From the NCBI GenBank assembly GCA_028826165.1, contig JAPDFW010000146.1:43843-107842 (forward strand): a DNA stretch of 64,000 bases, written 5' to 3'. Shown in pieces: positions 50,926 through 61,434 of the stretch. The notes beneath the pieces were generated by a model. That model saw only the letters and a program-made list of their open reading frames with translations. It had not been told where the DNA came from and ran no database searches. The position numbers were made by a program, and so were the translations under genes. Positions within the stretch are counted from its first letter, which is position 1. Each line of letters starts with the position of its first letter. The stretch is from Anaeramoeba ignava BMAN (Eukaryota; Protista; Anaeramoebae).

Positions 50926-52782
50926 TTAAAAAATAGAACAATTATTTTTTTGAATTTGATTTTGATTTTCATTTTCAATTTCAATTTCATTTTCAAATTG
51001 ATTTTGATTTTGATTTTGATTTTGATTATTAAATTTCCTAATTAATAAATCAAATAAATTTGGATTTGTTTGATTTAATTGAAAATAATCAATTCCAATT
51101 TGAATTTCATCAATTATTTCTTGTGTAATTTGAATTCCTTCTTTAATTTGATTTGAATAAATCCAATATTCAAATATTTGAAATGATTTATTACTTAATT
51201 CACTATAATCTGTAACTTTATTAGATGTATCTTCAGTTACAGATAAAAACATTCCTCGATATAATTCACTTCTCATTATTAATATTAATTTTGGAAATTT
51301 ATATTGTTTTTCTTTTCTTTCAATAATGAAATCATTTCCATTTTCATTTTCATTTAAATAAATTCTTTTCATTGTTTCTTCAATTTTTTCATTGGAATTT
51401 ATAATTTCTTTAATTTCAGAATATAATTTTGGATTAATTTTGGAATTGTTTGAATAAATCATTTCAAATATTTGATTTGATTCTTTAATTGATTTATTTG
51501 AAATAATTTCTTGAAGTTTTTCAATTTGATTTTGATTTTGATTTAATCTATATTTCAATATTAATTTATGAGCTTCAATTATTTCTCCATTTTCTGTTTT
51601 AAATGAAATATCACAAAATTCTTTTCTTCTAAATAGTTTTATCAAATCTTCTTCAAGATTGGAAAAAGGAGGAGAATAATAAAGAAATGATCTTTGATAT
51701 CCACAAAGAACATGATAATTGGAAATATTTTCATTAAATCTTAATTTAGGAAGTTCAATTTGAATTGGAATTAATTGATATTTTGTATCTCCAGTTCCTA
51801 ATTGACCATAAGAATTACTTCCAAATACTATTAATTTTGAATTTGATGTTAAAATCAAAGTATGTGTATTTCCAACAGAAAATTCAAGAATATTATCATC
51901 ATTTTCAAATAAAGATGATTTAATTTCAGTAAATTCATAAGTATTTTCATTTTTGCCAAGTCCATTTAATTGATATTCTCCACATGAATAAAGTTTTCTT
52001 TTTGGATTTTCATCTTCATTTTCAATCAACATTACTGAAAAAGCATATCCACATTGAATATCAATTATTTCACCTTTTGGAATATTTTGGATTTTGGTTA
52101 ATTTTTGGATTTCTGATTGTTCTTTTCTTGATTCTCCTAATCCAACTTGACCATAATTGTTATATCCGCATCCAAATAATTCTTGATTTGAATTCAAAAG
52201 AAAAACATGATAAGAAGTATTTCCTGAAAATATTTTAGAAACATTTTTCATCATTAAAATTGGTTTTTCTGTTTCATAAAGTGTTTTAGAATCAAAACCA
52301 AGTTGGCCATAATTATTTGAACCAATTCCATAAGCATTTTGATTTGAAGTTAATAAGTAAATTGAATTAGCAGAACAAACAATATCTTGAATTATTCTAT
52401 CATTTGGATCTTCAATTAATGATGAAATATTGATAAATTCTTTTGGATTTTCTGAATTAATATCTTTTCCTTTGGCAAATACATTTCCTTCTATTGTTAA
52501 AATAGCTTCATTTCCAAAACCAACAGTTACTTTTTGAATATTTTCTTCAAATTGGATTTTTGAAGGATTTTGATTTGAATCATTTTCATTTAGATATTCT
52601 ATTGCTTTTCCATTTTTAAAAAGGAAAATTGTTGAAAAATCTCCTGATGAAATTTGTTTAATTTGTTTTTCATTTTCATTTTCATTTTCAAATTTAAATT
52701 GAATTGGTTTTTTTATTTCATTTGGTTCATTTTTGAAAAGTTTTGGATATTTATTTAAACCAAAAAATAAACAATCATTCAT
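50926..52782 (-). CDS. RCC1-repeat + tandem BTB/POZ protein with C-terminal CaaX (CSIF)
   Basis: RCC1 motifs GSNNYGQLG, GYNNYGQVG, FSVGNTHTLIL, GSNSYGQLGTG; BTB FCDISF...IEAHKLIL and DFIIE...FPKLILIMRSELYRGMF. Confidence 0.92.
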   Translation of the reverse strand: MNDCLFFGLNKYPKLFKNEPNEIKKPIQFKFENENENEKQIKQISSGDFSTIFLFKNGKAIEYLNENDSNQNPSKIQFEENIQKVTVGFGNEAILTIEGNVFAKGKDINSENPKEFINISSLIEDPNDRIIQDIVCSANSIYLLTSNQNAYGIGSNNYGQLGFDSKTLYETEKPILMMKNVSKIFSGNTSYHVFLLNSNQELFGCGYNNYGQVGLGESRKEQSEIQKLTKIQNIPKGEIIDIQCGYAFSVMLIENEDENPKRKLYSCGEYQLNGLGKNENTYEFTEIKSSLFENDDNILEFSVGNTHTLILTSNSKLIVFGSNSYGQLGTGDTKYQLIPIQIELPKLRFNENISNYHVLCGYQRSFLYYSPPFSNLEEDLIKLFRRKEFCDISFKTENGEIIEAHKLILKYRLNQNQNQIEKLQEIISNKSIKESNQIFEMIYSNNSKINPKLYSEIKEIINSNEKIEETMKRIYLNENENGNDFIIERKEKQYKFPKLILIMRSELYRGMFLSVTEDTSNKVTDYSELSNKSFQIFEYWIYSNQIKEGIQITQEIIDEIQIGIDYFQLNQTNPNLFDLLIRKFNNQNQNQNQNQFENEIEIENENQNQIQKNNCSIF

Positions 52783-53032: not shown

Positions 53033-53358
53033 TTAATTTTGATTATTAAATTTGATAATTAATAAATCAAATAAATTTGGATTTGTTTGATTTAATTGAA
53101 AATAATCAATTCCAATTTGAATTTCATCAATAATTTCTTGTGTAATTTCAATTTCATCTTTAATTTGATTTGAATAAATCCAATATTCAAATATTTGAAA
53201 TGATTTATTACTTAATTCACTATAATCTGTAACTTTATTAGAAGTATCATTTGTTACAGATAAAAACATTCCTCGATATAATTCACTTCTCATTATTAAT
53301 ATTAATTTTGGAAATTTATATTGTTTTTCTTTTCTTTCAATAATAAAATCTTTTTCAT
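53033..53358 (-). pseudogene. 5'-truncated near-identical copy of the last BTB domain of the adjacent RCC1-BTB gene
   Basis: DFIIERKEKQYKFPKLILIMRSELYRGMF...NPNLFDLLI nearly identical to 51030-51335; no upstream coding frame or RCC1 part. Confidence 0.75.
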
Positions 53359-53359
53359 T

Positions 53360-53632
53360 AATTTATTTCAAAAATAAAATCAATATTATTAAATAATTAA
53401 ATTTAAAATCAATTCTATTTTATATATTTTATCAACATTTATTTATTTAAAATAATATAAAATTATTCCCAATAATTTAATAAAATTAATAAAATATTTT
53501 AATTAATTTATTTCAAAAATGAAATCAAGAATATTAAATAATTAGATTTGAAATTAATTCTAATTTATATATTTTATTAACATTTCTTTATTTAAAATAA
53601 TATAAAATTATTCCCAATAATTTAATAAAATT
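53360..53632. repeat. Diverged two-copy direct repeat, period about 145 bp
   Basis: ATTTATTTCAAAAAT...TATAAAATTATTCCCAATAATTTAATAAAATT occurs from about 53360 and again from about 53505. Confidence 0.7.
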
Positions 53633-53963
53633 GATAAGAAAATTGAAATATTTTATTAAAAATATAAATGGAATTAAAATAATTTTTAATAATAAATTAG
53701 AATTAATTTTTTTCCTAATTTATCTAATAATAAAGAATTTGAATTTAATTATTATTAATTTCTATTTTCTATTTTCTATTTTTGTTTATTATCAAAGAAC
53801 ACAATTTTTTCATTTCTTTTCCTAAATTTTTAATAATATTTTTAAATTAAATTGAATTGTTTAAAATTTGATTTGTTTCCTTATTTATTGATTTGAAGAA
53901 TTTAATTTGATTGAAGGTAAATGAAAATTGAATTAAATTTGAAAAAAAAATGAAAAATATTTT

Positions 53964-56900
53964 TTAAATGAAATAAGTTTCAAGTTCATCAACAACCCAT
54001 TTATTATAAGAACCAGCTAAATAACTTTGAGCTTCATTTGATTTATATTTAATTCCATTAGGTAGATTATAACAATTACCAAAATTTGAATAACCAGATT
54101 GTAAATTAGAATCTAACTCAATATCACCTATAAATATTTTAATAAGGATAAATAATTAATTTTAATAATAATTAATAATAATTTAATTTGAAATTAATTT
54201 TATTTTAAATTGAAATAATAATATTATTTATTATATTAATATTTTGGATTATTTATTAATTTAATTTTAATTATAATAATAAATATTTATTAAATATAAA
54301 TTATTTACCAACTATTTTAATAAAGATAAATAATTAATTTTAATAATAATTAATAATAATTTAATTTAAAATTAATTTTATTTTAAATTGAAATAATAAT
54401 ATTATTTATTATATTAATATTTTAGATTATTTATTAATTTAATTTTAATTATAATAATAATTATTTATTAAATATAAATTATTTACTCACTATTTTAATA
54501 AAGATAAATAATTAATTTTAATAATAATTAATAATAATTTATTTTAAAATTAATTTTATTTTAAATTTAAATAATAATATTATTTATTATATTAATATTT
54601 TGGATTATTTATTAATTTAATTTTAATTATAATAATAAAATATTTATTAAATATAAATTATTTACCAACTATTTTAATAAAGATAAATAATTAATTTTAA
54701 TAATAATTAATAATAATTTAATTTAAAATTAATTTTATTTTTAAATTGAAATAATAATATTATTTATTATATTAATATTTTGGATTATTTATTAATTTAA
54801 TTTTTAATTATAATAATAAATATTTATTAAATATAAATTATTTACAATCTATTTTAATAAAGATAAATAATTAATTTTAATAATAATTAATAATAATTTA
54901 ATTTAAAATTAATTTTATTTTAAATTTAAATAATAATATTATTTATTATATTAATATTTTGGATTATTTATTAATTTAATTTTAATTATAATAATAAATA
55001 TTTATTAAATATAAATTATTTACAATCTATTTCAATAAAAATAAATAATTAATTTTAATAATAATTAATAATAATTTAATTTAAAATTAATTTTATTTTT
55101 AAATTGAAATAATAATATTATTTATTATATTAATATTTTGGATTATTTATTAATTTAATTTTAATTATAATAATAAATATTTATTAAATATAAATTATTT
55201 ACAATCTATTTTAATAAATATAAATAATTAATTTTAATAATAATTAATAATAATTTAATTTAAAATTAATTTTATTTTAAATTGAAATAATAATATTATT
55301 TATTATATTAATATTTTAGATTATTTATTAATTTAATTTTAATTATAATAATAAATATTTATTAAATATAAATTATTTACTAGCTATTTTAATAAAGATA
55401 AATAATTAATTTTAATAATAATTAATAATAATTTAATTTAAAATTAATTTTAAATTGAAATAATAATATTATTTATTATATTAATATTTTGGATTATTTA
55501 TTAATTTAATTTTAATTATAATAATAAATATTTATTAAATATAAATTTATTTACTATCTATTTTAATAAAGATAAATAATTAATTTTAATAATAATTAAT
55601 AATAATTTAATTTAAAATTAATTTTATTTTAAATTTAAATAATAATATTATTTATTATATTAATATTTTGGATTATTTATTAATTTAATTTTAATTATAA
55701 TAATAAATATTTATTAAATATAAATTATTTATATTTACTTCCAAAAGTTGGACCATCATTTGAACCATAAAAAATTGCATATTTTTCTTCTCCTTGTTTA
55801 ATTGTAAACTTCTCTGGTTTTCTATTTCCTTTATCATTTCTTAATGAAAAAATAAATGCATTTGAATCTTTAATATATCCATAATCACCATAATCATAAC
55901 TCCATTTTGATTTATCATTTGTCCATCCAACTTGAGTAAAACCTCCAAAAATAAAATTATCTTTTGTTTTGATAATAACTAATGTTTTTCCTTTCCCATC
56001 AACTGCTTTATGCCAATTTTGAGAATCAAATCCATCTCTTTTTGCTGAAAACCCTTTTTTCATTTTAGAAAAAAAATCATTATCATTTATCCATTCTTGT
56101 AATTTCTTAACATATTCTTTATCTTTAATAATTTCTGAATCTGAAAATTGAGGTAAAATCTTCAATAATTTATTTTGATTTTGATTTTGATTTTCAATTT
56201 CTTTTTCAAATGATAATTTAATATTTTGGATTTCTTCATCTTTTTGTTTGAGAATCTTTTCTTTCTCTTCAATTTCTTTTTTGAGTTTCTCTTGAATCTC
56301 TTTATTTTCTTTTTCTTTCTTTTTATTTTCTTTCTCTTTCTTTTTATTTTCTTTCTCTTTCTTTTCAATTTCTTGTTTTTGATTTTGATTTTCAGATTCA
56401 AATGATTTAATTCTTTTATCTCTTCTTTTAATTTTCTTATCTTTTTCTTTGATTTTTGTTTGATTTTCTTGATCTTGAATTTCAAAAATAGTTCTTTCAA
56501 AATGAATTAAAAAAGAATTTGGAAGAAAAATATCAAATTGTTTTAATTTATCAAAATCTTGTTTTGAAATTGAATCTTTATCAAATAATGAAAAAAAAGA
56601 ATGAAATAATCTTTTCTTTGCATTCATTTTGTGTTTATATTTCCTTAATTTTTGATTTCTTTTTTTAATCCAATTATTTAAAAATTGAAAAAAATCAAAT
56701 TGAAAAATTTCTTTTTTTTCTTGTTTAAATTGAATAAATTTGATAATTTCTTCTTTAGTTAAATTGAATAAATTCTCATTATTTTGAATTTGGGAAAAAT
56801 TTTGATTTATTAATTCAAAACATTTTATTTCAATTTCATTTGAATTTAAATTTCGATTTTGGAATAAAAATTGGAAAAAATTTGAATAATTAATTGAATT

Positions 56901-57321
56901 TAAAATTTTTTTTTGAATAATTTCTTTCAATAAATTTAATTTAAAATAAATTGAAATTTCCAATAATTGGAGAAGATTTTCTTGATTCTCAAAAGAAATA
57001 TTTCCATAATAAATATAACTCAAAATTGATTCCATTTCTTTTTTATTAAATTGATTTAAAAAAATAGAAAGAGATTCTTGCCTTAATGACTCATTAAAAA
57101 GGAGATCTTGAAGATAAAATTGATTTATGAACTTTAATTTCAAAAGGATTTGATTTATTCTCAACAAAAATTGAAAAATCTTTAAATGAATTTCCATTTA
57201 AAAGGTTTGAATAATCTTTAATTAAATTTTTTGTTACTTTTTTTTCTAAATTTTTCATTTCATTTTCATTTTGATTTGCATTTGCATTTTCAATTTGGTT
57301 ATTATTATTATTATTATCCAT
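53964..57321 (-). CDS. BTB-BACK + coiled coil + TLDc domain protein; main exon 57321-55739 (frameshift near 57097), last exon 54127-53964, up to eight 3-nt micro-exons between
   Basis: BTB DFSIFV...IKVHKSILSSRSPF; TLDc GFSAKRDGFDSQNWHKAVDGKGKTLVIIKT...IFGGFT...DSNAFIFSL...GPTFG; last exon DIELDSNL...SNFGNCY...YLAGSYNKWVVDELETYFI-stop. Confidence 0.9.
54128..55738 (-). other. Tandem array of nine 171-181-bp GT...AG intron units separated by eight 3-nt spacers (candidate micro-exons)
   Basis: Each unit begins GTAAAT and ends ATAG on the minus strand. Spacers at 55555-57 (ATA), 55381-83 (CTA), 55203-05 (ATT), 55024-26 (ATT), 54846-48 (ATT), 54666-68 (TTG), 54487-89 (TGA), 54309-11 (TTG). Confidence 0.9.
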
Positions 57322-57731: not shown

Positions 57732-59450
57732 AAAATATTTTTAAATAATAAAATATTTAAATCTAAAACAATAAATTATTATTTTAATAATAAAATTAAA
57801 TATTAAATTATATTTTTAAATTAATTTATAAATTAAATATTAAATCAAACTTATTCTCATTTTTTATATTTATATGTTAAATATTTTAAATAATAAAATA
57901 TTTAAATCTAAAATATTAAATTATTATTTTAATAATAAAATTAAATATTAAATTATATTTTTAAATTAATTTATAAATTAAATATTAAATCAAATTTATT
58001 TTCATTTTTTATATTTATGTGTTAAATATTTTAAATAATAAAATATTTAAATCTAAAACAATAAATTATTATTTTAAACATAAAATTAAATATTAAATTA
58101 TATTTTTAAATTAATTTATAAATTAAATATTAAATTAAATCTATTCTTATTTTTTATATTTTATATGTTAAATATTTAAATAATAAAATATTTAAATCTA
58201 AAACATTAAATTATTATTTTAATAATAAAATTAAATATTAAATTATATTTTTAAATTAATTTATAAATTAAATATTAAATTAAATCTATTCTTATTTTTT
58301 ATATTTATATGTTAAATATTTAAATAATAAAATATTTAAATCTAAAACATTAAATTATTATTTTAATAATAAAACTAAATATTAAATTATATTTTTAAAT
58401 TAATTTATAAATTTAAATATTAAATTAAATTTATTTTCATTTTTTATATTTTATGTTTAATTTTTAAATAATAAAATATTTAAATCTAAAACAATAAATT
58501 ATTATTTTAATAATAAAATTAAATATTAAATTATATTTTTAAATTAATTTATAAATTAAATATTAAATTAAATCTATTCTTATTTTTTATATTTTTATGT
58601 TAAATATTTAAATAATAAAATATTTAAATCTAAAACAATAAATTATTATTTTAATAATAAATTAAATATTAAATTATATTTTTAAATTAATTTATAAATT
58701 AAATATTAAATTAAATCTATTCTTATTTTTTATATTTTATATGTTAAATATTTAAATAATAAAATATTTAAATCTAAAACAATAAATTATTATTTTAATA
58801 ATAAAATTAAATATTAAATTATATTTTTAAATTAATTTATAAATTAAATATTAAATTAAATCTATTTTCATTTTTTATATTTATGTGTTAAATATTTAAA
58901 TAATAAAATATTTAAATCTAAAACATAAATTATTATTTTAATAATAAAATTAAATATTAAATTATATTTTTAAATTAATTTATAAATTAAATATTAAATT
59001 AAATCTATTCTCATTTTTATATTTATGTGTTAAATATTTAAATAATAAAATATTTAAATCTAAAACAATAAATTATTATTTTAATAATAAAATTAAATAA
59101 TAAATTATATTTTTAAATTAATTTATAAATTAAATATTAAATTAAATCTATTTTCATTTTTTATATTTATGTGTTAAATATTTAAATAATAAAATATTTA
59201 AATCTAAAACATTAAATTATTATTTTAATAATAAAATTAAATATTAAATTATATTTTTAAATTAATTTATAAATTAAATATTAAATTAAATCTATTCTTA
59301 TTTTTTATATTTATATGTTAAATATTTAAATAATAAAATATTTAAATCTAAAACAATAAATTATTATTTTAATAATAAAATTAAATATTAAATTATATTT
59401 TTAAATTAATTTCTAAATTAAATATTAAATTAAATTAATTTTCATTTTTC
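57732..59450. repeat. Intergenic minisatellite, about 12 copies of a ~144-bp AT-rich unit
   Basis: Anchor TTTAAATCTAAAA recurs about every 144 bp from about 57760 to about 59350. Confidence 0.92.
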
Positions 59451-59489
59451 ATTTTTCATTTTTCAATTTTTTTTAAAAATAAAATAAAA

Positions 59490-61434
59490 ATGTTTGCATC
59501 ACTTCATGAAGTATTTGCACAATATATAAATCATAAAAATACAGCTGATGTAAGAATAATAATAACAGAAGAAAATCCAACAACAAAAACAACAACAACA
59601 ACAACACAATCACAAACAACAACAATATTATATGCACATAAATTTGTATTATCAACAGCAAGTCCACAATGGATGAATAAATTTTATAATCCAAATTGGA
59701 AAGATCCATCAAGTCCAAGACTTTTTACACTTAAATTCTCAGATATTGATGCAGATTCATTCCAAATTGTACTTGAATATATTTACACAAGAAAACCGAA
59801 TATTCAATCAAGAAATGTTGTAAAAGTGATGAGTTTTGCACAAAAATATCAAATGTTTGATCTTTTAAAAATGTGTGAATTATTTTTGAGTAGTAATTTA
59901 ACTCTTGAAAATTGTTTGGCTGCTTTTGAGTTTTCTTTGAAGAATTCGAACAAAGAAATTGAATATCAAGCCAAAGAATTTATTGAATTGAATTCATTAG
60001 AATTATTTGAAAAAGTTGCTTGTTTAGTTAGTTTGGAAGAATTGACTATTGTTGAAATATTAAAGCTCAAGCAAATTAGAGCATCTGAACTTTCTCTTTT
60101 TAATAGGCTTATGGAATGGGGTCAATGGCGTTGTTATTCACATAATTTGAAGGCTAATTTGTCTGATATGAAGGAAATGTTGAAAAATGTTCTTCCTTTT
60201 ATTAGAATTGAATTAATGGGATCTAAAGGAATTGAAACTTTAGAAGAAAGTGGATTGTATCCACAAGAAAAAATAGATCAAGCAAAGAGTCGGTTATTAC
60301 AAGAATTATTACAAAATCGTGAAAAGGATACGACTAAATTAAAGCCTATATCACAAGTAAAAACAATTTTGAATTTATTTAACAAATTTATTTAACAAAT
60401 TTAAAATGAATTTATTTAACAAATTTATTTAACAAATTTAAAATGAATTTATTTAACAAATTTATTTAACAAATTTATTTAACAAATTTAAAATGGATTT
60501 ATTTAACAAATTTAAAATGAATTTATTTAACAAATTTAAAATGAATTTAAAATGAATTTATTTAACAAATTTAAAATGAATTTATTTAACAAATTTAAAA
60601 TGAATTTATTTAACAAATTTAAAATGAATTTAAAATGAATTTAAAATGAATTTATTTAACAAATTTAAAATGAATTTATTTAACAAATTTATTTAACAAA
60701 TTTAAAATGAATTTATTTAACAAATTTAAAACAAATTTAAAATGAATTTAAAATGAATTTATTTATTTAAAATTTCATTTTAATAGATAAAGGTTTTATT
60801 AATTGCATCAGATGATAGTGCAAAATATAGAGAAGATGTAAAATTATCAATAACTTCAACAGGAATTAAAAATGTTGATATATTTGATGCAACAAAAGGA
60901 GTTCCACAATTACAACAACTTCAAAAATATGATGTAGTATTTGTATATTCAGCATCAATAAAATTTTTAAATGCAAAAAAAACAGGAGATGTTTTAGCAA
61001 AATATGTTGAATCAGGAAAAGGATTAGTTTTATGTTCAGATGAAGCACTTTTAAGAGGATCAGAAGGAGAAATACAAGGGAAAATAATTGATTATCTTCC
61101 AGTTGAAAAAGGAGATCATATTTGTGATGAAAAAACAGAACTTGGAGATATTAATTATACAAGACATGCAATTATGAATGGTGTAAATAGTTTTGATGGA
61201 GGTGCTGGTTCTCCTCATTGCAGTGGTGCTTGTACTAAAAGTGGGAAAGTTATTGCTTATTGGGATGATGGTGTTCCTTTGATTGTTGTTCATAGAAAAA
61301 TGGATAATTTTGGAAATATTGTTATTCTTAATTTTCAACCTCCTTCTGATAAAGTTGATGCTTATTATTGGGATTCTAAAACTGATGGTGCTAAAATTAT
61401 TGCTAATTCTGTTCAGTTTGCAGCTTCTAATTAA
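59490..61434 (+). CDS. BTB-BACK protein with C-terminal alpha/beta (class I GATase-like) domain; intron 60357-60786
   Basis: BTB ADVRI...LYAHKFVLSTASP...FQIVLEYIYT; BACK ASELSLFNRLMEWG; exon 2 IKVLLIASDD...YDVVFVYS...GDVLAKYVESGKGLV...IAYWDDGVPLI joins ORF 61174-61434. Confidence 0.85.
60370..60770. repeat. Intronic repeat built from AACAAATTT / AAAATGAATTT / ATTT modules
   Basis: Direct observation. Confidence 0.85.

Follow-up and report, generated by a model that had tools for sequence, protein, structure and literature searches.

The window analyzed here, a 64,000-nucleotide stretch of the Anaeramoeba ignava genome, carries on its minus strand the gene M0811_13738 (NCBI model P0001), a BTB-TLDc gene that is annotated with one intron. 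The annotated intron (55738-54128) consists of nine near-identical GT..AG units of 171-181 nt with eight 3-nt spacers between them (Table 1), and is recognized by TRF as a tandem repeat with a period of 178, 9.0 copies and 96% matches. The array is in phase 1 and lies in a loop of the TLDc domain, between the near-invariant residues G-P-x-F-G and D, and the NCBI model treats the whole of it as a single intron, joining the first donor directly to the last acceptor. One exon of 1.58 kb and one exon of 164 nt encode nearly all of the BTB-TLDc protein. The original prediction had described the nine units and eight spacers, and both were reproduced in our analysis, together with the loop translations given for them: G-N-T-N-Y-Y-F-V-I-G-D when all spacers are included and G-S-D when all are skipped. 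The flanking splice signals had been taken as invariant. They are near-identical at internal sites, with one internal acceptor carrying G in place of A six bases ahead of its end, and the internal sites are distinct in sequence from the first donor and the last acceptor.

Table 1. Features of the array gene (window positions) and rows of the second junction family (contig positions). On the minus strand, the higher coordinate of each intron unit is the first base of its GT.
Feature	Position	Strand	Basis
T5 run, frame break	57096..57100	-	copy comparison
First coding exon: BTB, coiled region, N-terminal TLDc; ends 1 base into codon after GPTFG	55739..57321	-	TLD PF07534 E 2.5e-16; NCBI model
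Intron unit 1, 181 nt, own distinctive first donor	55558..55738	-	
Spacer 1, ATA	55555..55557	-	
Intron unit 2, 171 nt	55384..55554	-	
Spacer 2, CTA	55381..55383	-	
Intron unit 3, 175 nt	55206..55380	-	
Spacer 3, ATT	55203..55205	-	
Intron unit 4, 176 nt	55027..55202	-	
Spacer 4, ATT	55024..55026	-	
Intron unit 5, 175 nt	54849..55023	-	
Spacer 5, ATT	54846..54848	-	
Intron unit 6, 177 nt	54669..54845	-	
Spacer 6, TTG	54666..54668	-	
Intron unit 7, 176 nt	54490..54665	-	
Spacer 7, TGA, split over two codons (phase 1)	54487..54489	-	
Intron unit 8, 175 nt	54312..54486	-	
Spacer 8, TTG	54309..54311	-	
Intron unit 9, 181 nt, distinctive T-richer terminal acceptor (type present in 21/24 genes)	54128..54308	-	
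Last exon: C-terminal 53 TLDc residues and stop codon	53964..54127	-	
Second junction family, row	C1:409304-413063	-	
Second junction family, row	C57:593648-597557	-	
Second junction family, row	C87:271575-274985+	-	

Pfam detects the TLD domain in the window gene at 69.7 bits, against a cut-off of 24.5, and returns a partial BTB match (E 0.0095), the BTB domain being broken by a frameshift. The gene had been assigned to the BTB-BACK proteins; in the window copy Pfam gives no BACK domain and only the partial BTB, and many paralogues have both PF00651 and PF07707. The frame break, which the earlier note had missed, falls in a run of five T that contains seven T in 14 of 16 copies, and the NCBI model bridges it by dropping part of the BTB domain. 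The assembly was obtained from nanopore data and polished with short reads; the loss of two bases from a T run is typical of nanopore error, and the frameshift is either a homopolymer assembly error or a lesion that may be real. The window gene is separated from a divergent BTB-BACK gene at 59490 by a 144-nt tandem repeat (57740-59456; 11.9 copies, 95% matches) that is devoid of AG-NNN-GT junctions. Positions 53033-53293 and 53341-53669 contain an 86-codon fragment, a duplicate of the C-terminal part of BTB in the neighbouring RCC1-BTB gene (50926-52782), and, next to it, a two-copy 145-nt repeat.

To determine the distribution of this layout, the genome (42,843,398 bases in 147 contigs) was searched for the junctions. 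With a gap of 3 nt, the exact junction has 316 matches in the genome, compared to a single match of the reversed-pattern control, while gaps of 0-2 nt yield two matches and gaps of 4-30 nt yield 13, all of them of 4 nt. With 316 occurrences against one in the control and 15 for the other lengths, the 3-nt layout is not due to chance. The genome scan for AG-N3-GT junctions that had been suggested as a check was also positive, the generic AT-flanked pattern giving 1454 matches against 627 for its reversed control. The corresponding AG-N6-GT pattern gives 155 matches against 1277, and the combination of an N3 excess with an N6 deficit indicates that 3-nt spacers extend well past the TLDc family. 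A second junction family is represented by 220 exact copies, in which 3-nt spacers follow one another in long rows at a spacing of 75-110 nt (Table 1). Five consecutive junctions with the same 6-nt spacer, GATGAT, are found at C67:402784-403794 (minus strand) and possibly represent an array of two-codon exons. The genome is also rich in AT-rich tandem repeats.

Within the TLDc family, searching with the last exon identified 508 candidate paralogues. Among the 150 listed, about 40 show the short open frame expected behind an intron in the TLDc loop, and most of the other listed last exons run through without a break. A comparison of the intron position and spacers in paralogues had been suggested as a check, and it yielded 23 further genes with a phase-1 intron at the same site, distributed over 20 genomic regions, in all of which the intron units are located at the TLDc loop. 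Parsing of the 24 genes yielded 273 spacers, of which 264 are 3 nt long; the nine off-length spacers are compatible with an indel background of 0.7% per site. Genes contain from 0 to 30 spacers with a fixed first donor and last acceptor, a range that includes a one-intron gene and a two-intron gene. Four tandem BTB-TLDc genes on contig C1 (L011 and L012, C1:1056500-1076499) have introns of 53-199 nt, and all 86 of their spacers are 3 nt. Each spacer is flanked by AG and GT and by introns of spliceable size; the array intron sizes of 53-199 nt are ordinary for this genome, all of them exceeding the shortest intron (35 nt) and lying around the mode (76 nt; median 102 nt) (PMC11550330). Several array genes have three extra exon bases ahead of the first donor, and in L018, L029 and L030 an acceptor of internal type closes the array; five exon bases and D-F come next, as though the last spacer and the final exon had fused. 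Double-length units, with junctions missing AG, GT or both, occur in L016, L027, L029 and L030, and L029 has three double-length units with a different insert.

The original prediction held that the spacers are truly variable, and the family-wide data agree: the 264 3-nt spacers comprise 25 different triplets, and within arrays the spacers diverge by 0.48 per site, compared to 0.020 in the intron bodies, a 24-fold difference. In two arrays whose units can be paired one to one, 13 of 16 spacers appear in the same order with matching intron lengths, and differences affect 5 of 48 spacer bases versus 21 of 1331 intron bases (P = 0.0016), the spacer changes being swaps among triplets known elsewhere in the family. 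Spacer composition also bears the mark of codons. In the phase-1 family, A or T occupies the middle spacer base, which corresponds to codon position 3, in 228 of 264 cases, and starts that could complete a stop codon are found in 22 of 264 spacers, although AA alone makes up positions 2-3 of roughly 30% of the gene's codons; TGA is tolerated in this phase, and five spacers are TGA. In the second junction family, whose triplets look like whole codons of a presumed phase 0, there are no stop triplets in at least 220 copies, A or T is the final base of 98 of 100 listed spacers, and 45 start with AA, AG or GA (hand counts). The shift of the codon signature with reading phase between the two junction families counts for coding use of the triplets.

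At the level of DNA, the proposal of coding micro-exons within a variable loop thus draws strong indirect support from the frame-preserving spacer length, the 24-fold faster substitution, the phase-dependent codon bias and the hypervariability of the same loop in intronless paralogues. Among the transcriptome-derived proteins of EukProt, none was found for any array gene; two more distant TLDc paralogues have one, and the gene of the EukProt TLDc protein that we examined is without an intron in the loop. The array genes may be inactive or weakly expressed in culture, or their copies may have been collapsed in assembly.

The loop was mapped on a predicted structure, as had been recommended. In the model of the TLDc domain of P0001 with all spacers skipped, it lies between two strands (pLDDT 97.4), and the model superimposes on 6r82 with a Z of 18.2 and an rmsd of 2.1 Å over 146 residues. 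A fold search returned six TLDc chains with Z of 12.8-18.2, the next match having 4.8, which places the domain within the TLDc family. Judged by motif rather than by residue-level alignment, the apparent counterpart of the loop in Ncoa7 is the glycine-rich bend (896-903, adjoining G896; PMC8608904). In paralogues without an array, the same loop is hypervariable and spans from one to over nine residues. Ordinary loops have 2-7 residues, compared to 1-2 when all spacers are skipped and up to 31 when all are included, and since the latter exceed nearly all intronless loops, this counts against full inclusion. Full inclusion gives codons rich in D (20%), Y (15%), N (9%) and F (9%), whereas intronless loops are G-rich instead.

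The internal introns have diverged by 2.7% within loci and by 2.9% between loci that lie on different contigs, compared to 15% for the last exons. For the spacers, divergence inside one locus (0.49) is nearly as high as that from one locus to another (0.52). In most genes the first donor and the last acceptor each retain a sequence of their own, and the one-intron gene has both. Intron homogenisation, spacer diversity and conserved termini make up the pattern expected of unequal crossover within arrays plus exchange between loci. The pattern foreseen for copy-number change and exchange by recombination is therefore present in the DNA, and the process behind it would be crossover or conversion between intron arms; high intron similarity could also come from recent spread out of a single source or from selection on the intron sequence. 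Spread of the array between unrelated paralogues was considered and set aside, as a single origin of the array genes is not rejected (p-AU 0.64). The intronless P0319 was likewise considered as a fossil cDNA, its loop YSWR resembling triplet products, but its position in the tree is unstable and the idea was given no weight.

Based on the features of the DNA described above, our preferred interpretation, with a probability of roughly 0.5, is that the spacers are real one-codon exons that are joined to their neighbours and diversified mainly in DNA, between intron homology arms. Each unit would be a normal-sized intron removed singly, joining neighbouring triplets, and the TLDc loop after GPxFG would be written codon by codon, with each phase-1 triplet and its neighbours setting two residues. 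The near-identical introns would act as homology arms of about 175 nt, unequal crossover between them would add or remove single codons in frame, and gene conversion would move triplets between units and between loci. To judge from the substitution rates, selection would keep the triplets diverse, and skipping of runs of units probably adds isoforms. The product would be a BTB-TLDc family with one rapidly remodelled surface loop, plausibly the recognition loop of ubiquitin-ligase adaptors; the suggested role as a Cullin-3 adaptor, with the loop contributing to substrate binding, may apply here.

The question of which triplets are joined bears directly on an alternative that we regard as possible but rather doubtful, namely that free combinatorial splicing is the main engine. 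Identical sites would compete, each transcript would keep a small ordered subset of triplets, and loops of ordinary length would result. Such competition is consistent with internal splice sites that are nearly identical between distinct and conserved terminal sites, and with ordinary loops being longer than those that skip all triplets and shorter than the longest that include all. It had been argued that no subset of triplets makes a stop, and at the window locus the 256 subsets indeed contain no stops and encode 112 distinct loops; in 15 of 22 genes tested no sampled subset contains a stop, and stop-prone starts are rare overall. In six paralogues, however, 12-54% of random half-subsets contain stops, as do 9 of 27 single inclusions in L014, and the stop-free argument is therefore local, not general. 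With every 3-nt spacer included, L014 again has a stop and the others are open. Stop-prone triplets, moreover, nearly always stand after a neighbour that does not end in T: a stop-prone spacer follows a T-ending neighbour once, against 4.95 expected (P = 0.013; 0.027 with duplicates collapsed), and neighbouring pairs show dependence (P = 0.038), a modest signal from related arrays that are not independent. Stop avoidance between adjacent spacers fits joining of neighbours better than free choice, and the ordinary intron size of the units would favour one-by-one removal. With regard to the docking-selector RNA pairing of Dscam-type clusters, local folding of junctions and units gave z values of -0.7 to -1.9 relative to shuffles, which are not significant. 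Neighbour joining and combinatorial splicing both use the triplets as exons, and their summed probabilities make exonic use in some form likely.

It is also conceivable, if improbable, that the array is one long intron with a tandem repeat derived from splice ends, in which the triplets are never exonic, the array being either an intronic satellite or a series of stepping stones by which the intron is removed piecewise. This would accord with the abundance of AT-rich tandem repeats in the genome, with the decay of some junctions and with the direct join used in the NCBI annotation, which yields a valid TLDc protein of confidently predicted fold (pLDDT 97). It leaves unexplained a 24-fold faster substitution limited to three bases, a fixed 3-nt length amid variable intron lengths and a codon signature that changes with the phase from one junction family to the other. 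If transcripts hold only direct joins, the architecture would be an odd intronic satellite; even then, it calls for explanation that the introns of paralogues are five times more similar to each other than their flanking exons are, and that three hypervariable bases separate one intron from the next. That errors of assembly or polishing created the array or the variety of its spacers, or that the window gene and most array genes are dead copies, is very improbable: the polished nanopore assembly, the frameshift in the window gene, the short open frames upstream of the array in many paralogues and the lack of EukProt proteins for array genes speak for it, and against it stand the same architecture at 24 loci on many contigs, the 13 of 16 spacers and the intron lengths shared in order by two arrays, and the 450 or more codons open upstream in at least seven array genes.

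Comparison with known systems further delimits the architecture. The TLDc family (PF07534) includes OXR1, NCOA7, TBC1D24 and mEAK7; the array genes share its fold and motifs (Z 18.2 to 6r82) and differ from known TLDc proteins in their fusion to BTB, their hundreds of copies and their hypervariable loop. For the introns themselves, the nearest parallels are Introner elements and intron gain by tandem duplication. Introner elements are near-identical introns scattered over unrelated genes. The A. ignava arrays also provide many near-identical complete introns in a protist genome, but in the 20 regions these are not dispersed among unrelated genes: they are confined to a single homologous site in one family, where they follow each other head to tail, with variable triplets between them in place of copies of one target site. 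Ordinary 3-nt microexons are single, conserved and placed between unrelated introns. The spacers resemble them in being very short, frame-preserving and overlooked by annotation pipelines, yet are hypervariable and arranged in rows of up to 30, a layout that none of the papers retrieved describes. The ordinary microexons of animals and plants show a 3n length bias (PMC8042270). In arthropod Dscam1, one exon is chosen from many homologous, domain-sized exons (PMC6800468). Both systems place tandem alternative coding units in one gene and vary a putative recognition surface; in A. ignava, by contrast, it is the intron that is repeated and conserved, the variable unit being a single codon, and Dscam-type inclusion of a single exon, here a single triplet, would make stops in six array genes.

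The array appears to work most like the micro-exon genes (MEGs) of Schistosoma, which encode secreted proteins with a signal peptide largely through micro-exons, mostly of about 15 nt (6-81), between introns of 0.1-5 kb (PMC10526429). Both systems line up very short exons, in multiples of three, in rows, and MEGs vary by gene duplication and alternative splicing. The putative A. ignava exons differ in being uniformly 3 nt and split across codons, in having near-identical introns common to several loci and in supplying one loop of a folded BTB-TLDc protein; with two large exons encoding almost all of that protein, the gene falls outside the definition of a MEG. As it fits none of the families tested, we take the architecture to be of a new kind. 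Our search of the literature on Anaeramoeba and microexons, which was incomplete, found no paper, and the note on introns in the A. ignava genome paper (PMC11550330) does not mention micro-exons; the architecture is real and apparently undescribed.

As a tentative and more far-reaching proposal, the arrays may amount to a two-level diversifier in a single-celled eukaryote, in which a genome-wide pool of one-codon exons is exchanged among genes via cloned introns and variable skipping gives from tens to millions of loop variants per gene for intracellular recognition proteins, the device having been built more than once and in different phases. If the triplets are spliced in, the introns would serve as recombination arms and the exons would be reduced to one codon, so that loop length and sequence change in frame by single residues. 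The public A. ignava annotation would then miss many exons, and the arrays would offer a natural test system for a spliceosome that meets as many as 30 exons of 3 nt in succession, all of them with identical splice sites. They would also add a new way of generating variable protein surfaces to those known from Dscam, MEGs and diversity-generating retroelements.
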